Shown here one piece after another: positions 13,002 to 62,300 of a DNA stretch of 64,000 bases (position 1 is its first letter; each line of letters starts with the position of its first letter). Below the pieces are notes generated by a model. It was not told the DNA's origin. It searched no databases and was given only the letters and a program-made list of their open reading frames with translations. Source of the DNA: Lytechinus pictus (Eukaryota); the NCBI RefSeq assembly GCF_037042905.1, contig NC_087247.1, positions 5,394,001 through 5,458,000 on the forward strand, given 5' to 3'. The position numbers were made by a program, and so were the translations under genes.

Positions 13002-15099
13002 CTATCGTTTTCCAGACACTCCTCCGGAACATGCTTGACCAGAAGGATCATGGTTGCAACTTCCTCCACTGGGGGCATATACAGGACCTCCTCCTGGTGC
13101 TCCTGGTCCTGCTGGTCCTCCTGGGGCATAAGGGCGAGCTGGAGCGTGTGGTGCTGGAATCCTTTGCCCAGGTGCATTAGGTCTAGGTGCTCTTGGTCCA
13201 GGTAGGGGAGCACGTGGCCCTCCTGCAGGTGCTCGGGGCCGAGTTGATGGAGCACGCGGTCCTCCAATGGGTACACTGGGCCTGGGTACAGGAGCTTGGG
13301 ATCCAGGTGCAGGAGCAAATGGTCCTACAGGTCCCCGTGGAGCAGATGGACGCGGGCCCGGGGCATATGGACGGCCGGATACACGCGGTCCGGTTGGTGC
13401 ACGGGGCCCGCCCGGAGCTCTTGGACTGCCTGGAGCACGTGGACTACCTGGGACACGTGGACTACCTGGAGCACGAGGCGAACCAGGGCGAGGAGCACGT
13501 GAACCTCCACGACTACCACCAATCCCATCAGCTCCGACAGCCCCATCAGTCCCGCCATCTCCACCAGCCCCATCAGCTCCACCAGTACCGTCTCCAGCAT
13601 CAGCACCATCAACACCATCTGCGCCATCAATATCACCAGAACCGTAGTTATAGTACTCTTCACCACTACCACTGCTTTCGTCACTGCCGCTTGAACCTTC
13701 ACCTTCGTAATCTCCGTAGTCAGCATCAACTTCACCATCGTAATCACCAACGTCTCCTCCATCTCCACCATCCCCACCGTCACTTGGGGAAACGGGTGCA
13801 AATCTTGTTTCGGGAACTACTGGTGCGGCTGGTGCAGCGGGGACAGGTGCAGCCGGTCTTGGTGCAACTGGGGCATATGCAGGAGCTCTCGGAGGCTGTG
13901 GTCTTGGTGCAGCGGGTACGTATGTTGGAGCACGGGGCATCGGTGGAGCAGGAGCCCGAGGAGCTTGGGCATCTGACTGCTGATCTGAACTTCCACCAGC
14001 ATCGTTCCCGTCTTGAGTAAATGGACCACTACCTCCAGGGGGTCCCGGTGCGAATCCAGGCATACCTGGAGCATGTGGGGCATGGCTCGGAGGAAATGGA
14101 GCATTTGGATAGTATTGTGGGGAATTTGGCTGGTATCCTGGAGCAAATGGCACACCTGGTGCATGTGCTGGGGCAGATGGTGCATGAGGTTGTTGGGGTG
14201 GTGGGGCGTTAGGAGCTGACGGATAAGGGCCTGGAGCAGGAGCTCTAGGCGGTTGATAGCCTGGGTGTCCTGGAGTGGGAGCTCTAGGTGGTTGATTTCC
14301 TGGATAGCCTGGTGCAGGAGCTCTAGCTGGAGGATAGCCTGGTGCGTGTCCCGGTGCTGGAGCACTAGCAGGAGCCCCTCCTCCCCATGATTGGCGGTCA
14401 GCACCACAAGCGGCACCGGGTTTCCCCAGGTCGCACGAATCTCTTGGAACTGAAAGAAAACGGGCAATCAAATGAAGATAGTAAAGTAGATGTGGCCGGC
14501 TACATTCTAGACGCGTAAGCTTTTTATGGCACAACGAGAAATCAATTTGTTTTATGCTCTTTATTTGTATTCATTCCAACTTGTAAAATCATATTCACAT
14601 CGACTAAGAAAAATAAGTTACACTTGCAGATAAAAATACATATGTACAAAGCAGAGGCTGGACCTGGTTTAGGTGCAGCACTATTATGGATATATTTTTT
14701 TTTTCTGAAGGGACTATTGTCATGTCTTGGATAAGAATAAATAACCCTTCGAGTGAAAAGTGAGAGTCAAAACCACAAGACCATTTCGCTCTCACACCAT
14801 CATATTGAAAATGAATAATTTATATATACCGTATACCACAACTAAAAAAGCTATCAATTATTGATATTGGTTACATATCAATAATATAATAATAATTATA
14901 AAGTACGTTATAAAAGCATTTTGTCGCAAATAACTAAAATGAATTACCAACTTGGATTTAAAAAATTGCAAGGAACTATCATAAAAGTGTAAATCATATG
15001 ACTAATGCAATGAAACTCACATCTAGGAGACGCCAAAGAGGAAACACTCAGCGATAAAATACATGACAATATAGCGACAGTCGCCCTCTGCGTCCTCAT
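13002..15099 (-). CDS. g2: secreted Pro/Ala/Gly-rich acidic matrix protein with truncated Kazal remnant (~508 aa)
   Basis: Exons 15099-15021 (MRTQRATVAILSCILSLSVSSLASPR, donor GTGAGT) and 14449-13002 (FPRDSCDLGKPGAACGADRQSW...; acidic DYGDYEGEGSSGSDESSGSGEEYY; ends SCNHDPSGQACSGGVSGKR*; acceptor ttctttcag). Confidence 0.88.
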
Positions 15100-33954: not shown

Positions 33955-34101
33955 NNNNNNNNNNNNNNNNNNNNNNNNNNNNNNNNNNNNNNNNNNNNNN
34001 NNNNNNNNNNNNNNNNNNNNNNNNNNNNNNNNNNNNNNNNNNNNNNNNNNNNNNNNNNNNNNNNNNNNNNNNNNNNNNNNNNNNNNNNNNNNNNNNNNNN
34101 N
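33955..34101. other. Assembly gap
   Basis: Run of N. Confidence 0.99.
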
Positions 34102-35796: not shown

Positions 35797-38700
35797 CTAA
35801 CAGGGTCCGTTTCTAATCTGTTTAAGACGATGATCCTTCCTTACACACGCCGAATGTCGTAGATCACATGAACTTCTGTAAGTTTGTCCGTCAGTCCCAC
35901 ACACTTGCATCGGTTGAGCGATGAAAAGACGAGGACAAATCTCACAAGGCTCGTCAGCAAATCCTGCAAATCAAAAGAAAATAAATCACCTATTTAGGTA
36001 GCATATTTTGGAGTTTCGCACGATGCACGGCTGATTCAAGAAGACAATAAAGGTATTGAAAGTGCCCGTCAAATGACAATGCACAGTTGAAAGGTCATTT
36101 TCGAAAATTCTTAAAACCAGAACCGCAGCTCGTCCTTAGTTTTGGAGCTGACTAACAATTGCAAACATGTTGTTTGTCGTTTGTCAGAGTCCATGCAGTA
36201 CAAAATTCCTGTTTTGATTTACAAATTTTCGACTTTACGGTTGCTCATTGTCATGGAGGACATTTGAAAATATAGTTCTATGTTCGTAAAAGCGTCACGC
36301 GTGGTGCGTAACTACCTGTTATTAGAATAGCTTAAGGGTGTAGGTGATGATAAATGTGTTTCTGCATACAACGATTGACGATCTTAGATTTTTAGAACTA
36401 CAAAGTGCTTTTAAGAAACCGTATTAATTATTTATTTTGTTCTAGACAACGATTAAATCATTTACAAACATATTCACAATTCGCTAATGAATTCACCCTT
36501 TTACAGATATTGGGCGATACGAAAGAGGAAACACGAGAGTGTCAAATTAACACTATTTTGACTAATGAAAACTAGGCGTGTAGGGATGTTTCGAAAATAA
36601 TAATGTATAATTACCTAAACTGATTTACCATTATCATTAGTTGGAGCGTCGCATCCGTTACTTGTCCCTCCATTTTCTCCATTTTCCCCGCATTCCTTAT
36701 CTCTACTTGGTGTCTCAGGTTCCGGAGCTGGCGCTTTCGGTGATGGCTTCGGAGCAGGAGGAGGTGGAGGAGGAGGGATCGGTGCTTTTGGTTTGGGCGC
36801 TTTTGGGACGACAGGTGGAGGAGCCGGCCTTCGTGGAGGAGCGGATGGAGCCGCTGGACGGCGAGCGGGAGAGCGGGGAGCTGGGGGAGGAGCTCTAGGA
36901 ATAGTGTTGGAGATTCGATGACGTGGAGATGGGGCTGCGACATGGGGTCTAACTGGAGCTGCAGCAGGTGTATTTCTCCCAGGGGATAGATGAATGTCTA
37001 CCTCTCCTTCGGTTACCTCTCCGCCGTGTCCTCCCTCTGATGGTTCGACATCTCCTGGTGAAGAGATGTCACACTCCTCGCTGCTGTCGCTTCCACAACC
37101 TACACAATTGCAAAATTTATATAATTATGAAATTTCAGGGATCCCAAAAAAGTATTTCTGAATCCCCTGAAATACCATTAAAAGTAGGTAATTATCGAAT
37201 TACAATATTCAGGGCATAACGCACCGCGATAGTCATCATAATTATAATCATAATCAGACTTATACTTAACATCTATTGTATAATGATATTATTTCATTCT
37301 TGTGAGGACGACAAGAGCAGTCTTGCCGAAGTGTCCAGTTTGGGTGGTCTTTTTCACTAGCAGCATATGCCCACGAAAGAATACATGATGTACCGTGAAA
37401 CCACTATCATTTTAATTGTCCAATTCTATCAAGTCTGTCGAGTGCCTCTTAGAAAGAATAAAAACTACTTACATGTATATATACCTGTCTAAATTTAGTT
37501 CTTTACAGCAACAACAGCCCTTATTCTAATAGTATTAGTGAACGGGAGTAACGTTTGTCGAGCAAATCACAACAACTCTATACGACGACAAATGAAAACT
37601 TGAGACGGCAGAATATAATTGTATTATTATCTGTTTTGTCATAATGTTGTGTTAAGGAGTTATTTTCGCACGAGGGGTAATAATAGAAATTGCATCCCTC
37701 TTGTCGTACAACTTCAACTAACCTGCTCCTCCTATGCTTCCTCCATCAAATCCTCCGTCAGTTGCGTCATTAGTGCCATCTACCCCATCTACAGCATCAT
37801 GAGCTCCAGCTGAGGGGACGAGGGCCGGTTGGTCTCTAGCTGGAGGAGCCCGGGCAGGAGCGCCCATGACAGGTGCTTTTGTGAAGAAAATGCATATTTG
37901 GCAACAATGAATACGAAGAATATTATCATGACTATTGGAATGCAGAGACATGAAAATGATATCAGATTTATATCAATCTGTAATGTTTGTAAAGGATTCA
38001 GTCATGTTTATGGGCAAACAGGGACGTAAATCAATGTTTCGGATGGGGGGGGGGGGAGTTTATTTATGTCACAAATTCTGTTCTAATACAGAAATTGACA
38101 ATTTAGCATCAAACCGTACAAAGCATTTCATGGGCCCATTTCGTCTGGGGACAATAGTGACTCTAATATGCTTGTGCCTGGGCCCATACATGTCTGTCGT
38201 TGTTGGTGCTGGATACGCTAGTGATGATGCACATGACACGAGAGAATATTCACAGCTACTAAAGCCTTCTGATTACCATGATTATCATAATATCGGAAAT
38301 TTGGAATGACAAACCTTTGGGTGCCCGGGCCGGGGATCGGGGCCTTGGGGCACGCGGAGGTGCTGGAGCAAGTGGTGTTCTAGGGTTTGGCATAGGTGCT
38401 CGTGGGGCTGGGATCGGTGGAGGAGGAGGAGCTCGAGGTGGAGTACCATGCGCAGGAGCTGTAGGGGTACAGGGAGCAGGGTCTCCTCCGCATTGCCCAT
38501 TGGAGCCACACGATCCTCCATTGTCGTCTCGTTTAACTGTTTACAAAAAATAAAATGATGACACTGTCGATCGTTTCATTTGTAATATCAAGTAAGCATG
38601 ACTTTCTGCACTCTAGAGAGGTAACTTGCTACACTCTAAAAAAAATATTGGGTAAAAATATTCCATGAGGATCATGTGTCCAAACAACATTGGGCATTTC

Positions 38701-40962: not shown

Positions 40963-41562
40963 TGACTTATAACTAGATTTCCGTCGTTTTTATCGTCTCC
41001 TGTCTGCCGTTTATTTTACCTTTTTCTTCACCTTCATTTTCTTTTTTTCTACAGACGTAATTACCTTATGATTCGATCAGATTATGTTTCCTATCTCTCA
41101 TTTTCTCTTCAAAATACGAGTACGCACTCCTTTCTATCCGCCTGGAGCCTTCCTTGTATCTCAAATCATCGAATTTTCCATCGGCCTCAAACTAACATTA
41201 ACGAGAGCAAAAACACTCAAAGGCAACTTCAAAGTGTAATGCACCAACTCAAAATCATCGTTATCATTCAAGGTTTAATACAAAGGTTACATAAAAATGT
41301 AATAAGGAATATTATGTAGAGAGAGAGAGAGAAGTTTGATATCTCAAAAATAACGTTACTCTATAGGCAATAGGCCTTACACATTATTCGGATAGTTTTT
41401 ATATCATCCTAAGTATTGTCGATGACTCTTGCAACAGAGATAGTGGTTCGGGTTTAATACGATAATAATCTGTTTTATAATATTCCCAGGCTTCCATAAT
41501 TAGTTACTATTTTTGGGGGGGGTTAAAAATATTTATATCAGTGCAATCAAATGAGTACTTGA

Positions 41563-41720
41563 ACATTTTCATAATTTCATAACGTTGAGATCATGGCCTC
41601 CTTCCATACAGGATGTATACTGGAGATCGCACAGAGTGGTATACGTTCTTCCATCTGACCCGCAGACTTCACTACCCCTTGAGACCCCTTGAGATCTCAA
41701 CCGGACACGGGATACAGATG
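41563..41720 (-). pseudogene. Decayed Kazal-coding segment of g6
   Basis: 10-bp tandem duplication ACCCCTTGAG (41674-41693) shifts the frame. The out-of-frame remainder reads SEVCGSDGRTYTTLCDLQYTSCMEGGHDLNVMKL*KC, with TGA at 41569-41571 where paralogues have the Gly of the terminal G-x-C. Confidence 0.85.
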
Positions 41721-44333
41721 TCAGCATCCTTCGTATCGCACCCTTCCTCACACACTTCTTCAACATGTTCACCATCAGTGGGGTTTCCACCATCCCCGTC
41801 ACCACCACCATTACTACCATCTTCGTCACCATCACCTTCCCCACCACCACCACCACCACCACCATTACCCCCAGCCACACCCTTCCCGCCACCACCACCA
41901 CCACTTTGTTCTGTGGAGCTACCAGTAGGAGAATTGGAAGAGTAGACAACAACTGGAACCAACTTAGGCATGTTAGGGATGAGGTGAACAATGGTTTGAT
42001 GGAAACCTGATGATACTTTCTTATCGCCTCCTTCTTTTCGAGTGCTGCCTCCTGTATCACCCGCATCCTCACCTGCGTACAGGGAGAACAAGGTCGTGAG
42101 ATACGGGCGTTTTAATCACAGGAGGCAGTACCATCCATGAACACACATCAAGACCACAACAATAACAACAACAAACATTTTATTTGGACAACCGAGACAG
42201 GATACAATCTAAAACGGAATCGAATTAACTAATTCGTGTTATATGTTTTATTATTCACGTATAAATTTCAAAACAAAAAAAATCTATAATAAATAAGTAC
42301 AAACAAAATAAATAGTAAACAAAAGTACAAGATGTAGATCAAATGGAATGAACTTAATAAATATCAATTCTCAAGCTATTTATATCACCCAAGTCATTGG
42401 ATTCTATTCCTAGAAGAAATGTGAGTAACGGTTCGAGAGGAACATATAGTAACAATTACTACGGTATAAAATGGAAATGACATTTAAAATATTATTCTTG
42501 ATGTGACATAACTAGACCTGATAATTTCAGCTAAAGTTTTGTCGAAAACCTATAAGAGGACTACCGCTACGTTCAATTTCAAAGAAGGAGAAAGGGAACA
42601 AACAAACAAAAATCCTTAGCCCACTCAAACATACAAGCAAAGTAACATACAAAAGATCAACGAAATATACTCATTGCTCAACCATTTGGGCCACCAATAT
42701 CAATGCAATCAAAATCTATAGCTAGCAATGACTGTCATGGGGAATGAAGATTACCGCGCACCTGACGTGCCCCCAGCATCTCCACCACCATCACCGCCTT
42801 CGCAACCACCTTCACCACAACCACCGTCACCCCCTTCACCACCGCATCCTTCGCCTCCTCCTTCACCTCCCTCGCATCCCTCCCCGCCACCGGATTCGCC
42901 ATCTGTACTCTCTTCACTGCTGGAGCTGCTGCTGCTACCTTCACCACCACTGACACCACCATCGGCACCACCACTGGCACCCTCTCCAGCATCACAACCA
43001 CCACCACCACTGGCGTCTCCACCCTCACATCCTCCGTCACCGCCGCCATCACCGCCGCCGTCACCACCACCACCATCGCCTCCACCGCAGCCGCCTTTTC
43101 CGCATCCGCCATCTCCGCCACCGTCTCCGCCATCTCCGCCACCGTCTCCGCCACCATCGCCTCCACCGCAGCCGCCTTTTCCGCATCCGCCACCGTCACC
43201 ACCTCCATCACCGCAACCATCGGCTCCTGCATCGCAAGTGCCTCCTCCTCCACCTCCCCCTCCTGATGGAATAATAACCAACGTAATAAATAACAAGAAC
43301 GTGGGGGGGGGGCTTGATATCGAGAATTGATGTATATGGGAACCGAAATAGTCATTTCCAATTCATACGTCCTTTTTTCAAATGTTTTAATATAACTTTC
43401 ATGAATTTAGAAATTTTACAAATTTGCTTGGAATGGTAGCGGTTCTTTGTTTTGCTTTATTAGCTATTAAGAGTAATCCGTAAGCATAATGCTGTGCGTG
43501 AATACAGGGGCGGATCCAGGATTTTCCAAAGGGGGAGGGGGCAAATTTTGCGGAGGAAAATTTTGACAAGCCAAAAAAAAAAAGGTTTTCAACCATGAAT
43601 TAAAGACATTTCGTGCCCGAAAAAAGTTGACAAGCAAAAAAAAAGGTCTTTAATTTTAAAGGGGGGGGGGGGACATTTCGGTTTCAATTGTATTTTTACA
43701 TTACAAATTTTAATTTCTCTTCTCAAAGGGGGGCACGTGCCCTATGTGCCCCCCTCTGGATCTGCGCCTGCGTGAATATAAATTTGTCATTTTCGTGTCA
43801 TCTAATGGAACAAACTGTTGGGCATTTAATAGTCGTTCAAATGTCTTTAATATCAAGAAGCATACATTTTCTTAACAACTTTCTCACATAATTATGTTCT
43901 CAATGTTAGGGACACTGCTAAAAACTTACAAAGCCCGAAATATTGTTTTTCTTTTATCACTAATCAATATTTTTGAAAGTCTGGAGGATTATGCTCATTC
44001 AAATATTTAATTGTTAGAAAGAGGATTTCGGAAAAAAATAAAAACAGACATTGACTGTCGGCTTGTTTATAGATCCAATATAATCTGTCAAATATTATTT
44101 GCATTTTACAAATTCTAAATCTACAAGAAATTCCATAGCAAGGCAAAAGTGAACATGCTGGAAATAAAAAGAAAATGATTCATCATTTTGACATCAAACA
44201 TAATGAGTGGTAGCTGAAATATATATATGTATATAAAACAAAAAATCTTACGCTTTTCTCTTGGAGCTCCTTCAGTTACCCTACACAAGAGGAAGAAACA
44301 GACAAGGAGTGCCAATCCGGTGACAGTCTTCAT
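41672..44333 (-). CDS. g6: secreted Gly/Asp/Cys-rich acidic protein, Kazal domain truncated by frameshift (~327 aa; may be a pseudogene)
   Basis: Exons 44333-44252 (MKTVTGLALLVCFFLLCRVTEGAPREK), 43262-42762 (RGGGGGGGTCDAGADGC...SSSSSSSEES..., donor GTGCGC) and 42072-41672 (ends DICIPCPVEISRGLKG*). Confidence 0.75.
43505..43770. mobile_element. CAGGGGCGGATCC-type short element in g6 intron
   Basis: CAGGGGCGGATCCAG ... CTGGATCTGCGCCTG with 8-bp TSD CGTGAATA (43497-43504, 43771-43778). Confidence 0.8.
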
Positions 44334-52993: not shown

Positions 52994-55707
52994 TTAGCAG
53001 GCTCCATCCTTTGCCTTCGAAAGCAGGAGATCACCACGGATACAAGCAGAGTATCGGAGGTCACATGCACTTCTGTATGTCTGTCCGTCTGTACCGCACA
53101 CCCCCATGCTATGTCCCACGAAATGGTTTGGACAGGGAACGCAGTGGTTTCTCAGGTCCTCTAAATGCAGAAGGAAGTCATATGATAGGGTCAGGTATAA
53201 TTTTCTTGATTAGATAATAATATTGGAGAAATTAAAAGAATGTATTGAATTTTAAAGGATTTTCATCAAGATTATTAGTTGATATGTTTTTATTATACGT
53301 ACCACTAATTTGATGCTTATTGACATATTACATATGTTACGCCTTGACCTTACAAGATGAGGTAACATATTCAATTTTGTCTTTCAATTGATTTATTACA
53401 TTTTTTTATATACCTTCATTTCAAATCACCGTGTCACCATAATACTCCTAAAGAGATGTACTTTTCTGAAATTATTTGAAATAATATAAGTGAAGTGAAA
53501 ACAAATCAATGGTTCCAGGGAGATGTCTCTCTTTTATGCTTATTTCATATCCATTCAATATCGAAGCAAATCGTTGCAAAATGTGTTGCATTGATTTATA
53601 ATACTGCACCGCCTATAGCTATCCCCGAAGTATTTTTTTCTAAACGCAGCTAAATGGGTAATACAATTATTATTGCAGCATTGCTACAAACAATGCCACC
53701 CTACCTTTTCGCAAAAGAAGCATCAGGATTGATGTTCCTCAAGAGAGGTTCACATTTCCCCCTCAAAAACCAAAATAGCATAAGCGGGAGATTTTGTTTT
53801 ATGTGACGTGTATCGATGAAGACGGCCATTGAATGTGACTACATTTAAACAAAAAAATGTCCCACCGTAATCACCATTGGTATCACAACCATTACTGGTG
53901 CCGCCATCTCCATTATCACCACATCCGTTGTCGCCATTGTCTCCATCACTGGGGCTTTCGGGTTCAGGTGCAGATGGAGCCTTTGGAGCGGGAGCTGGTG
54001 CAGGAGGAGCAGGGGGAGCAGGAGCAGGTGGAGCTCTCGGTGCTGGAGCTGGTGCAGGTGCTGGAGCTCTTGGTGCCGGGGCAGGAACTCTTGGTGCCGG
54101 GGCTGGAGCTCTTGGTGCCGGGGCTGGAGCTCTTGGTGCCGGGGCTCTATAAACAGGCGCCCTAGGAGCCTGAGCTGGGGCTCTATAAACAGGCGCCCTA
54201 GGAGCTGATGGTGCAGCGGCGGGTGCATATGCAGGAGCACGGGGAGATGGAGCACGCGCTGGTGCACTAGGGGCTGGTGCCCTTGCAGGAGCTCTGGGGG
54301 CTGGTGCTTGTGCAGGTGCTCGTGGACGTGGAGCGGCAGCAGGGTAACCAGAAGGAGCAGCAGCAGGTGCTCCAGCTCCTCCGCCTCCGGCTCCTCCACT
54401 AAAGCCTCCACCATCGCCGCCGCCAGCACCTCCTCCCCCACCACCACTTGAACCACTTCCGGCACCGTATTCATATCCTCCACACTCTTCACTACTGTCA
54501 CCACCACAACCGCCTGTAAACATTGAGACATTTATATATTATGTATTTTAGCAATAAAGATATACTCTACCACTATAGATAGCATTAACATTTATTGATA
54601 CTGGTATTTTCGTTACATTTTCTGAATGAGATGTTTTCATTGTCTCTTTAGTCTTACATAATTTTTAATTCCGAAGGAATATAGGCCTACATTTAGTTTC
54701 TTTTTTCAATGTGACTTAAACTAACAGATCTGGGGCAGTAACTTCAACCTTCTTCATTTCCAATAGCATCATATATCAAAATTACCCATCGGATGATAAT
54801 TTATTATAAGCTGATATATTCAAATCGGAGTAAAACCATTAAAGAAAACTTTTCCCGGGATAACAATGATATAATTAGGCCTATATATTGCTCGAATAAT
54901 GAAAGTATATTTATTTTACCTCCGAATCCATCTTCGCTGCTGCCTCCACCGTAGTCGTATTCATAACCGTAATCGTATCCCTCGGCTCCATCTCCTCCCT
55001 CTGCTTCACCGTACGCTGCATAATAACCTGGCCCTGATGGAGCAAATGCGGGAGCAGAAGGAGCTCTTGCGGGTGCTCTCATCGGAGCCCTAGGTGATGG
55101 AGCGGCTGGGATCGGTGCCCGAGGTGCTGGGGCTGGAGCACGTGCTCGTGGGGCTGGAGCTCGTGGGGGAGGAGGAGGTGGAGGCGGAGCTCGGGGAGCA
55201 GGCACTGGGGCTGGGGCTGGTGCAGGAGCAGCCGGTGCACATGCCCTGGGATCTGCTGAGCAGGGATCCGTGGAGCCACAGTCAGATCCGCCGTTGTCAC
55301 ATCCATTTCCGTTATCATCACGTTTCTCTGCAAACATTCAGTGCAAAATGAAGGAAATCTGATTTTTGTTTCAATGTACAATTTTCTCTTTAGAGACGGG
55401 TATATTTTTTAATCAATGGCATATTAACCATCTGTAATAGAAATTATATGACAACATTAAATGTAACGTCTCCATTTTACTAATCTCTGTGACAACTGTC
55501 TGCCAATTCACCCCCCCCCAAAAAAAAAAAGGAACAATATCACATTTCATGTTTTTAAATGCCAAGTCAATATGATCAAATCAAATCAAGCCTTGCTTTC
55601 TTTGGGTGGTGTGAACACTTCTTACCTCGCGGCGCTGCGACAGAGGGGTCGACCGTCAATGCCAGCAAAACTAGCAACACTAGGGTTTTCACCAAATCCA
55701 TCTTCAT
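52994..55707 (-). CDS. g7: secreted Pro/Ala/Arg-rich protein with C-terminal 6-Cys Kazal domain (~434 aa)
   Basis: Exons 55707-55626 (MKMDLVKTLVLLVLLALTVDPSVAAPR), 55327-54920 (EKRDDNGNGCD...), 54513-53866 (GGCGGDSSEEC...APAPRAP repeats...GGTSNGCD) and 53160-52994 (EDLRNHCVPCPNHFVGHSMGVCGTDGQTYRSACDLRYSACIRGDLLLSKAKDGAC*). All phase 1. Confidence 0.88.
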
Positions 55708-57896: not shown

Positions 57897-58048
57897 NNNN
57901 NNNNNNNNNNNNNNNNNNNNNNNNNNNNNNNNNNNNNNNNNNNNNNNNNNNNNNNNNNNNNNNNNNNNNNNNNNNNNNNNNNNNNNNNNNNNNNNNNNNN
58001 NNNNNNNNNNNNNNNNNNNNNNNNNNNNNNNNNNNNNNNNNNNNNNNN
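57897..58048. other. Assembly gap
   Basis: Run of N. Confidence 0.99.
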
Positions 58049-59338: not shown

Positions 59339-62300
59339 TTAGCAGCGCCCTATCTTGGTCATCGTGAGCTTCTTGTTGGCTTTGGAACAGGCTTCGTAGC
59401 TTAGGTGACATGGACTTTCATAGGTCTTTCCGTTAGAACCACATACCTTGTACTGCTTTACCATATTTGCTGGGCATTTAGTACATCCATGTCTGGTGGA
59501 ACCTGCATTGATGCACAAATAATTTCTGCACAATTTACAAGAATTTCTGCTATGGAATAGTAAGGTATTGGTTTCGTATATGTTCGTTCATAAAATGTTC
59601 GTTCGAGAATAGCAAAGGCACCACTTAAAACCAGGATGTAAGTTTTGTTTCATTTTGTTTTATTTTTTAAACCTTATTGTAAGTGCTTTAGTCATGATTT
59701 CGATGCCATTATTTTGTTTCAAACATTTCATTTTCAGCATCAGTTGAATTGGATGAATTTCAACAGCCTGTTTGTAATATTCCCTGTCCTGTGAGAGCTT
59801 TGATTCAACTATCCACAGTTGACGCTGGTTTAAAACCAAATGATAAGCGATATATTAATCAAATAGTAAGATAGTTTTGTCATGAAAATGTAAACTTGTG
59901 ATACAATCCTCACATATTCCTTACCACCGTTTCCTCCACCGCCGATCCCGCCGCCATTACCGCCAGCTCCAGTTCTCTCTTCGATACCACCAGCTCCATT
60001 CCCTCCAGCGTCACATAATTCACCACCAGCCAGGTTGCAACCGCCATCTCCTCCATTCCCTCCTCCTCCTCCATCACCACCATCGCATCCCTCGCCTCCG
60101 TTGCCATCGCAACCACCATCTCCGCCATCACCACCACCATCTCCGCCATCACCATTATCTCCGCCATCACCTCCATCACCACCATCACCTCCATCACCAC
60201 CGTCACCTCCATCACCGTCTCCGCCACTCTGCCCACCGACCCACCTAGGAATGTAGATTGGGATGAACTGAGGGCGAGAAGGAGGGAATACATTGTTGTA
60301 GCTTCCACCTGGGGGGTCTGCACTGCTTTCTTCATATCCATCGCCGCCATCACCGCCACCGTCTCCACCACCGTCTCCGCCACCATCTCCACCGCCATCA
60401 CCTCCGTCACCTCCATCCCCACCATCACATTCTTCTTCACTGCTGCTGCTACTGCTTCCTCCTCCTCCTGTGCATCCACCTCCACCGTCAGCAGCTAATG
60501 CACATCAAAGGTAAATAAGAAATGTGAGGCCGTATTGTCGATGCAATGCACGCACTTCCTATGTTATAGTTATAGTTAGTATATGGCTTTTTCAACAAAG
60601 TAAAATTATATAATTATATAAAATAACATAGTCCAGACCATGTTTGTCACTTCAGATAAGTATAACAGGAGTAAATCATTATTCAACCACAGATTATTTA
60701 ATTTTTTTTCAAATCGTAAAAATGGGGATGTAGAACAAAAACACAGAAAGAGTAAAAAGTACATCAAAAAGAGAGGTATGGGAGATGCAACTAATTATTT
60801 CCCATATTATTTGACTGAGAGAAAAAGTAACTTCACACCTAGATCGTCTTGCCCCCCTTCCTATCAACATATCCCCGCAATCATGACAAAAGCGACAAAG
60901 AAAAAAGTCAAACTTACCCGAAGCTCCACCAGCATCGCCACCATCACCTCCGTCACACCCGCCATCACCTCCACATCCGCCATCTCCACCACCGTCACCA
61001 CCTCCACAATCTCCGCCACAATCTCCACCGCCGTCACCACCATTTCCACCACAGTCGCCGCCACAGTCGCCGCCACCATCCCCTCCGCAATCGCCACCGC
61101 CACAGTCGCCTCCACCGTCTCCGCCATCTCCACCATCACAGTTGTTACCGCTGCAATCTCCTCCGTCTCCTCCATCGCCCCCGTCGCCGCCATCACAACC
61201 TCCGTCTCCACCGTCACACCCTCCATCACATCCACCATCGCCGCCATCACCACCATCGCATCCACCTCCGTCACCGCCTTCAGCATCGCCTTCCTCTTCA
61301 CTGCTGCTGCTGCTGCTCCCGCCTCCACTTCCACCAGCAGATGCACCACCATCACCGCCATCACCACCGTCTCCGCCACCATCGCCGCCTCCATCGCCAC
61401 CACCGTCACCACCTCCTCCATCTCCTCCACCACCATCTCCTCCACCACCACCATCTCCTCCACCACCACCATCTCCTCCGCCTCCATCACCACCGCCACC
61501 ACCACCACCGCCACCACCGCCGTTTCCATCATTACCGCCACCGCAGTCACCACCTCCACCGTCGCAGCCACCATTGCCGCCTCCATCACCACCACCTCCA
61601 TCACCTCCACCATCGCCGCCGCCATCTCCACCGTCACCGCCATCACCTCCGTCACATCCATCCCCGTTACCACCATCGCATCCATCTCCACCACCGTCTC
61701 CTCCGCCATCCCCTCCATCACAACCGTCTCCATTACCCCCATCACAAGAATCTCCGTCTCCTGTAAATAAAAGTACATAATTATTATAATGATGACAATG
61801 ATGATGATGTTGATGATGATAATAATGATAATTATAAAAATAATGATAATAAACATGATAAATGTAATAATAATAACAATAATGATAATAGTACGTTTTA
61901 TTTTAATGTTACCCGTTTACATCAAAATTTTGTTCAAATCTGTCATACTTTGAGGAGCCCATAATATACAAGCTTTGCTTTCTATAGATCCCACTATAGT
62001 TGGATCCTCAATTTTCGCAACTTATAAATCATATTATCCTTTGTATTTTATCATCATAATGTGTCTATTTTAAGTTGATTTGATGACCTTGGAATACTAT
62101 TTATGACATTGACTTGTTGCGATTATATTAACTTGGCTTATATTTGTTCAAATTGAAATAAATGAAATGAAATGAAATAATAATAATGATAGTATCTTAT
62201 TCTTGAAATATTGCTTATTGAAGCTTTATCCCCAACTATAAAAGACTGGATGACTGACTATCATATTCAAATATAACTGTTTCCTGAATGGCGTTGAAAC

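Follow-up and report, generated by a model that had tools for sequence, protein, structure and literature searches.

Does g6, a gene of the sea urchin Lytechinus pictus whose Kazal domain is broken in the genome assembly, still encode a secreted matrix protein, or has it recently become a pseudogene? The window, by which we mean the whole 64-kb stretch of DNA that was analysed, contains eight same-strand genes for secreted low-complexity proteins, of which g1-g4 carry an N-terminal Kazal domain (g2 only half of one) and g5-g8 a C-terminal one. An earlier note on this DNA had described two lesions in the Kazal domain of g6 and had offered a Kazal-less protein or a young pseudogene as the outcome; both stay the right alternatives.

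Changes in the Kazal segment of g6

On the minus strand, the assembly has a perfect 10-bp tandem duplication at 41674-41693, inside the Kazal domain of g6, which shifts the reading frame by +1 between the second and third Kazal cysteines (Cys2 and Cys3). The duplicated unit is TCTCAAGGGG on the minus strand, and the plus strand reads ACCCCTTGAG twice at 41674-41693 or, equivalently, at 41675-41694. From 41740 towards 41560 the minus-strand letters run GAC ATC TGT ATC CCG TGT CCG GTT GAG ATC TCA AGG GGT CTC AAG GGG TAG, which translates as DICIPCPVEISRGLKG and a stop; the g6 protein as encoded ends in ...CIPCPVEISRGLKG, with ISRGLKG as its C-terminus and the stop TAG at 41674-41672. After this new stop the letters continue TGA AGT CTG, and the adjacent frame, taken from 41673, reads SEVCGSDGRTYTTLCDLQYTSCMEGGHDLNVMKL and then TGA (41571-41569), AAA TGT and TCA. 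This frame holds an out-of-frame Kazal remnant (SEVCGSDGRTY..LCDL..SC..MKL, 41572-41673, minus strand) with Cys3, Cys4 and Cys5 and a match to the Kazal_2 profile. The TGA at 41569-41571 is the second lesion: it replaces the invariant Gly of the G-x-Cys6 motif, a residue that is Gly in all nine other aligned Kazal domains of the family and is encoded by GGA in the orthologous contig described below (L006), as the earlier note had supposed. The following AAA TGT TCA (41560-41568) specifies Lys and Cys6 and ends in a third change, new with respect to that note, since the ancestral stop directly after the last cysteine is now TCA; L006 reads AAC TGT TAA here. The codon after Cys6 is likewise a stop in the three C-terminal Kazal paralogues of the window (g5, g7 and g8), while distant paralogues outside the window extend 2-20 residues beyond Cys6. 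Frameshift, nonsense codon and lost stop all lie within the 125-bp Kazal segment, and relative to its functional relatives g6 thus bears disabling lesions of the kind that define pseudogenes.

The identity of the damaged segment was examined with the Kazal profiles PF07648 and PF00050 and with an alignment of nine other Kazal domains, namely those of eight L. pictus paralogues and of the orthologue L006. Taken alone, the g6 remnant (41572-41682) matched Pfam Kazal_2 with 35.8 bits (E 8.9e-9) against a curated cut-off of 22.8 bits, the match covering only profile positions 11-37 of 48. Invariant among the nine domains are Cys1, Cys2-Pro, V-C-G-S/T-D/N-G-x-T-Y, Cys4-x-L, Cys5 and G-x-Cys6, and g6 retains every one of these residues save the Gly that is now TGA. 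The spacing of 10 residues between Cys2 and Cys3, found in L006 and g8, is reached in g6 only with a single copy of the repeat, which bears out the claim that the duplication breaks the domain. In its core VCGSDGRTY...C......C, in the Cys1-x2-Cys2-Pro ahead of it and in a spacing like that of the paralogues, g6 resembles a Kazal domain; unlike one, it has a frameshift between Cys2 and Cys3 and a stop two codons before Cys6. A full Kazal domain comprises six cysteines in one continuous frame, paired 1-5, 2-4 and 3-6, whereas in g6 Cys1 and Cys2 lie in the upstream frame, Cys3 to Cys5 in the +1 frame and Cys6 behind the TGA, and the encoded protein can hold Cys1 and Cys2 only. We also considered a 14-nt GT..AG 'mini-intron' across the second repeat copy, but it is too short and its removal fails to restore the frame.

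The doubled ACCCCTTGAG has a single match in the 64-kb window, with 0 expected from 100 shuffles. Perfect non-periodic 10-bp tandem duplications as a class occur four times in the window against 0.06 expected in block shuffles, which indicates that they are a normal mutation type in the L. pictus genome, and further perfect 10-bp duplications of the type of the g6 lesion are present in non-coding DNA of the same genome. These counts bear on whether the damage is fixed at all. The reference haplotype may carry a segregating null allele, or the duplication may have been introduced by assembly or polishing at a site that is heterozygous. Heterozygosity in sea urchins is high; given this, it would be nothing unusual for two alleles to differ by two substitutions in 125 bp, the assembly has one haplotype only, and a single segregating null allele could carry all three changes. 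However, a perfect duplication of 10 bp that is not a homopolymer is atypical as a consensus error, its like is found in non-coding DNA, and two substitutions in the very segment disabled by the duplication would be hard to explain if the duplication were unreal. We hold an unfixed allele or an artefact to be unlikely; in the assembly, both reported lesions are present. When a second haplotype or a duplicate of g6 was sought across the assembly, only low-complexity matches were obtained elsewhere. The window contains two runs of N, at 33955-34101 (147 bases) and 57897-58048 (152 bases), neither of them close to g6.

Gene model and reading frame of g6

The earlier note had further held that the rest of the gene, including about 310 upstream codons, is intact. 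This agrees with a three-exon model of 984 nt (327 codons and a stop) whose junctions are consistently in phase 1. Exon 1 (44252-44333, minus strand, as are all g6 exons) starts with ATG at 44333, encodes the signal peptide MKTVTGLALLVCFFLLC... and APREK(R), and ends at the phase-1 donor AAGC/gtaaga (slashes mark splice sites). Exon 2 (42762-43262, 501 nt) lies between the acceptor ccatcag/GA and the phase-1 donor TCAG/gtgcgc. Exon 3 as now read (41672-42072) begins at the acceptor gtacgcag/GT and encodes, in this order, a unique segment (..KKVSSGFHQ..KLVPVVVYSSNSP..), a Gly/Asp run, VCEEGCDTKDADI, the Cys1-Cys2 part of the Kazal domain (CIPCP), and VEISRG followed by LKG and TAG. The signal exon, both splice junctions and the 324 upstream codons are undamaged. 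The intactness itself stands, but its weight is small: two of the three frames are stop-free over exon 2 and the upstream part of exon 3, so an open upstream frame is weak evidence for a working gene. At the end of exon 1 (44252-44270), the APREKR that follows the signal peptide is a furin-type R-x-K-R dibasic motif, which is common to Strongylocentrotus purpuratus GLEAN3_17587 (AAAPREKRDDNG) and could, judged from the sequence, be a short propeptide cleavage site.

In composition, exon 2 is 57% Gly and 12% Asp with about 8% each of Glu, Ser and Cys, and has a Ser run followed by EES; the whole g6 model is 41% Gly, 10% Asp, 8% Glu, 7% Ser and 5.5% Cys. With 3.7% Ala and less than 2.4% Pro it has no Ala/Pro-rich neutral or basic motif, and g6 is of the Gly/Asp/Cys type without AP blocks. 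It does combine a signal peptide with an acidic Gly-rich motif that contains an SSEE-type serine cluster. A tryptic peptide predicted from the three-exon model in the Gly frame is DADICIPCPVEISR.

Two other frames were considered. Exon 2 can be read in a Val/Ala/Glu-rich frame by way of two other GT sites, as in the S. purpuratus model GLEAN3_17588. This frame has the variable site on codon position 2 and G in 137 of 167 third positions, whereas in the Gly frame the periodicity is normal and the variable site is the third codon position (entropy 1.78 versus 0.86 at position 1); we rejected the Val/Ala/Glu-rich frame for this reason and because the Gly frame carries the Ser-run-plus-Glu cluster typical of the paralogues. 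A frame of 167 codons that leads from exon 3 on into the Kazal remnant is a by-product of the +1 shift, and we rejected it because the other frame of exon 3 is confirmed by S. purpuratus MS/MS peptides, as detailed below. A shared promoter motif was sought among g1, g2 and g5-g8, and none was found.

Orthologous and paralogous genes of the matrix cluster

A word-indexed protein search with g6 exon 3 gave one match, P0001, the product of a genomic Logan contig of 1.38 kb, L006, and an exhaustive protein search added only P0004 and P0082, the latter being the L. pictus RefSeq protein XP_063953989.1. Because it is nearly identical to a segment of GLEAN3_17588, L006 is of strongylocentrotid origin. 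Protein searches for a nearer relative returned P0001 alone with exon 3 as query, the query itself with the g6 part of P0082, and nothing with exon 2. L006 contains the end of the intron and a last exon fused in the same way as that of g6, whose Kazal domain, ...DAFICKPIPCPVEISQNSEVCGSDGRTYASLCDLKYASCMKRGLKLEVVKSGNC, is intact and closed by a stop (GNC-stop). In the DNA alignment with g6 it has no 10-bp repeat, reads GGA for the TGA of g6 and TAA for its TCA, after which both sequences continue with the same AGTACTCATTT; the other indels in the exon, of 60, 3, 3 and 6 nt, are all multiples of 3. Nothing in the whole 812-Mb L. pictus assembly apart from g6 matches P0001 closely; g6 is therefore its orthologue, and there is no intact spare copy. 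On contigs C3 and C2 at least 12 further Kazal-coding exons gave matches, and no match was interrupted by a stop.

Judged by this comparison the lesions are derived, being absent from the orthologue of the other family and from all paralogues. Between g6 and L006, dS is 0.6-0.8, and dN/dS is 0.35 over 122 alignable upstream codons and 0.34 over the 34 codons of the remnant, with synonymous differences in excess in both parts (P = 1e-4 and P = 0.04, respectively). The earlier note had expected a comparison of dN/dS upstream and downstream of the frameshift to be informative; the two values do reveal past constraint, but as one pairwise comparison that is not split by branch they do not separate the possible outcomes. 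Nucleotide identity is 77.5% in the remnant, with no indel, 69% in the intron and 59% in the 3' flank, where there are gaps. Since L006 has neither the duplication nor the TGA nor the TCA, and since the remnant is still conserved, the damage must be lineage-specific and young. The recent domain loss that had been proposed is thus upheld: the lesions are missing from orthologue and paralogues, all invariant residues but the Gly are kept, and the remnant is more conserved than the intron or the 3' flank. From these alignments, purifying selection acted on the Kazal domain during most of the period since the two urchin families split and was lifted recently; a third change within the 125-bp segment agrees with relaxed constraint on it. 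The remnant represents a share of 0.17 of the one-step nonsense targets in g6, and a single nonsense codon there is therefore no significant sign of selection on the upstream part.

A second strongylocentrotid copy of the g6-type exon, P0004, comes from a 4.6-kb contig (ENA ERZ26222911) of a very close relative of the L006 species. It has six GGSEDxGKGVAGG units (13 residues, a 39-nt repeat), compared with two in L006 and about five in GLEAN3_17588, and after these repeats it is in the +1 frame through the whole Kazal domain. This change of frame could be a frameshift allele that arose independently, or else the assembly may have slipped within the 39-nt repeat.

The window is orthologous to the S. 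purpuratus tooth and test matrix cluster GLEAN3_17586-17590, with order and sequences matched to GLEAN3_17586-17589, and g6 has both a conserved position in this tandem cluster and orthology to a listed matrix protein. Further members with a C-terminal Kazal domain lie on the same chromosome at 5.21-5.52 Mb, their Kazal exons all open. In the S. purpuratus tooth matrix, proteins that combine a Kazal domain with low-complexity sequence, in the form of acidic Gly-rich and Ala/Pro-rich motifs, are GLEAN3_17587-17590 and 22278 (Mann et al. 2008, PMC2614417). GLEAN3_17588, reported there as having '2 Kazal, duplicated set of features' (PMC2614417), is in its published sequence (1982 residues; supplementary file 7 of the same paper) a chain of the g6, g5, g4, g3 and g2 orthologues in window order, and the signal peptide of the g4 orthologue stands inside it (MNILRSAVILMLVFSASLA). 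The gene order g6-g5-g4-g3-g2, which occupies about 13000-44333 of the window, is conserved between L. pictus and S. purpuratus.

Residues 1-372 of GLEAN3_17588 form the g6 part, whose start, MMKTFTGLALLTCFFLLCR, matches the g6 N-terminus and which consists of the signal peptide, an 'acidic Val-rich motif' and EGTGHMGGSTRKK...FVPVVVFPSK...(GGSEDxGKGVAGG)n...GVCEEECDTTDAFI. It shares with g6 the start M-KT-TGLALL-CFFLLCR and the exon-3 segment GGSTRK..KVSS..VPVVV..SP.G..KGVAGG..VCEE.CDT.DA, and by this likeness g6 is the orthologue of the N-terminal part of Sp-Hypp_136 (LOC575627, GLEAN3_17588). The two differ in that the published model is a five-gene chain, takes exon 2 in the other open frame and omits the Kazal domain that L006 encodes after DAFIC, and in that L. 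pictus g6 has one KGVAGG unit where GLEAN3_17588 has about five GGSEDxGKGVAGG repeats, a basic segment shorter by 60 nt in frame, and a broken Kazal domain. The 'acidic Val-rich motif' is given as 31% Val, 20% Glu and 16% Ala (PMC2614417, supplementary file 7), and L. pictus exon 2 read in the wrong frame yields 30.5% Val, 21.6% Ala and 13.2% Glu; in that frame the Gly codons GGT, GGC, GGA and GGG appear as Val, Ala, Glu and Gly, respectively. The motif is very probably the Gly-rich exon read one base off, a frame error of the gene model. The frame of exon 3, in turn, is confirmed by two peptides that both fall in the g6 part, FVPVVVFPSK from the S. purpuratus tooth matrix (PMC2614417) and the phosphopeptide GVAGGSEDVGK from the test matrix (Mann et al. 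2010, PMC2830187). Thus, for the S. purpuratus orthologue of g6, location in the matrix is established.

Two side observations concern the genes next to g6. GLEAN3_17587, the orthologue of g7, is reported as the sole family member without a Kazal domain, and L. pictus g7 has a Kazal exon at 52997-53209; the GLEAN3_17587 model probably misses its last exon, and we set it aside as a precedent for a Kazal-less protein. The tooth-matrix peptide CPANMVK, assigned to GLEAN3_17586, is an exact match to the Kazal domain of g8 (exon 59342-59587).

The chained S. purpuratus model bears on the only RefSeq model that touches g6. XP_063953989.1 ('skin secretory protein xP2-like', L. pictus) maps to the window at 100% identity; it starts at the first, internal Met of g6 exon 3 (41971) and continues with g5 exons 2-5, its segments being 41717-41971, 38316-38534, 37721-37879, 36627-37100 and 35800-35964, with residues 1-85 placed at 41971-41717 by tblastn. 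It leaves exon 3 ahead of the lesions, using the donor T/GTATCC inside the Cys1 codon (41710-41716, minus strand) to reach g5 exon 2 at 38536. Among database proteins of 112-355 residues none contains g6 exon 2, and RefSeq appears to hold no stand-alone g6 protein of about 327 residues. Taken at face value, this model would make g6 and g5 one transcription unit, in which a splice from 41716 to 38536 leaves the old g6 Kazal domain intronic and the g5 Kazal domain is used instead. The exact junction occurs both in XP_063953989.1 and in GLEAN3_17588 (DAFI/FKRDDNGG), and the corresponding site of L006, T/GTAAGC, is a good donor. Nevertheless, GLEAN3_17588 is an evident five-gene chain that reads through the signal peptide of the next gene, and a protein-guided annotation pipeline could have copied the junction from it. 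The L. pictus donor T/GTATCC, moreover, matches only 3 of 6 intron consensus positions, and XP_063953989.1 skips a plausible phase-1 signal exon belonging to g5 at 39372-39315 (MWTVLTVIMLSSMISAETK, donor AAAG/gtattg). Finally, the Kazal segment behind the donor has been under purifying selection between both families, and so it was translated. On these grounds, namely an over-merged S. purpuratus model, a poor donor, a signal exon of g5 and a conserved Kazal segment, we regard the g6-g5 junction of XP_063953989.1 as doubtful and a joint transcription unit as very improbable.

Fate of the g6 product

Whether a domain of this family can decay while its protein persists is illustrated by g2. This gene encodes only the first half of an N-terminal Kazal domain (14385-14449; PRDSCDLGKPGAACGAD, then RQSWGGG...), the rest having been lost in frame, and its S. 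purpuratus orthologue is in the same half-Kazal state. A peptide from this half domain, DSCDLGTPGAACGSDGQSWGAGGTPAR, was sequenced from the S. purpuratus tooth matrix (PMC2614417). As the half domain is common to both urchin families and the peptide has been sequenced, the g2 state must be old and the protein is made. Like g6, g2 is a member of the same family that has lost part of its Kazal domain and kept its low-complexity body. Unlike g6, its Kazal domain is N-terminal, its loss is in frame and old, and its protein is proven by MS/MS; in g6 the domain is C-terminal, the loss is by frameshift plus nonsense and is seen only in L. pictus, and the protein is a putative one.

With this precedent of tolerated Kazal decay, we favour, at about even odds, a Kazal-less g6 protein that is still made and tolerated over a dead gene. 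Sp-Hypp_136, whose N-terminal part is orthologous to g6, is a secreted, acidic biomineral matrix phosphoprotein rich in Gly, Asp, Ser and Cys, normally with one terminal Kazal-type domain. In the L. pictus lineage, replication slippage would have duplicated 10 bp between Kazal Cys2 and Cys3 and shifted the frame, and the roughly 100 bp downstream, no longer translated, would then have gained two changes, of the Gly codon to TGA and of the stop to TCA; alternatively, the TGA may have come first. In nonsense-mediated decay (NMD) that depends on exon junctions, a stop codon in the last exon leaves the transcript stable, and since the new stop of g6 is in the last exon, its mRNA should escape this pathway. 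If transcribed, the gene would yield a secreted protein of 327 residues, composed of the signal peptide and the acidic low-complexity body without a folded Kazal domain, which would end in ...VCEEGCDTKDADICIPCPVEISRGLKG with Cys1 and Cys2 (CIPC) deprived of their partners Cys5 and Cys4. The loss would be tolerated because the family owes its role in the matrix to the disordered body. In this account we infer that the mRNA escapes NMD, that expression continues and that the loss is tolerated, while the lesions, their derived state and youth, the orthology and the matrix location of the orthologue are shown.

The same damage may instead mark a young unitary pseudogene, in which the whole of g6 is unused, the Kazal segment took the first damage by chance, and the Gly-rich exons stay open owing to stop-poor composition and to repeat slippage in multiples of three. 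Three changes within the last 125 bp and none upstream also fit a recently dead gene, slippage of period-3 repeats keeps the frame without selection, and two of three upstream frames are open in any case. In addition, the database search found no stand-alone g6 protein, and the only RefSeq model touching the gene begins at an internal Met of exon 3 and exits before the lesions. Against this, no damage is seen in the signal exon, at either splice junction or in any of the 324 upstream codons, and a stop located in the last exon is not enough to silence a gene. Moreover, the S. purpuratus orthologue is a genuine matrix protein, and a half-Kazal paralogue has survived since the split of Lytechinus and Strongylocentrotus. 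We consider a dead gene possible, yet less probable than a Kazal-less g6 protein that is still made.

With g6, a known biomineral matrix cluster gains a new, damaged member. The event is of an ordinary kind: taken by itself, it is no surprise that one copy in a fast-evolving tandem family has acquired a lineage-specific frameshift. For annotation, the comparison ties the L. pictus cluster gene by gene to S. purpuratus tooth and test proteome entries, exposes GLEAN3_17588 as a five-gene chain and reveals that XP_063953989.1 repeats the doubtful g6-g5 junction. We tentatively raise a broader reading, in which this echinoid matrix family loses Kazal domains repeatedly and tolerates the loss, with g6 at a first stage and g2 at the settled end state. 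The g6 product would then be an acidic Gly/Asp/Cys protein that is disordered throughout and has two cysteines without partners, its mRNA spared by NMD, and the frameshifted g6 orthologue P0004 may be an independent instance of Kazal loss. In vertebrates, the path from SPARC/SPARCL1 to the SCPP genes led from a gene with a follistatin/Kazal-like module to disordered acidic mineral-binding proteins in tandem arrays. Lineage and family are unrelated to those of g6, and here there is one gene's lesion and no derived family; if true, however, recurrent loss would be a live invertebrate parallel to vertebrate SCPP genes shedding their SPARC-type module. If the truncated g6 protein is made, one or more members of a proven biomineral matrix family would be able to do without the folded Kazal domain, and selection would be retaining the disordered acidic body; as a genetically tractable urchin, L. 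pictus is suited to testing this.
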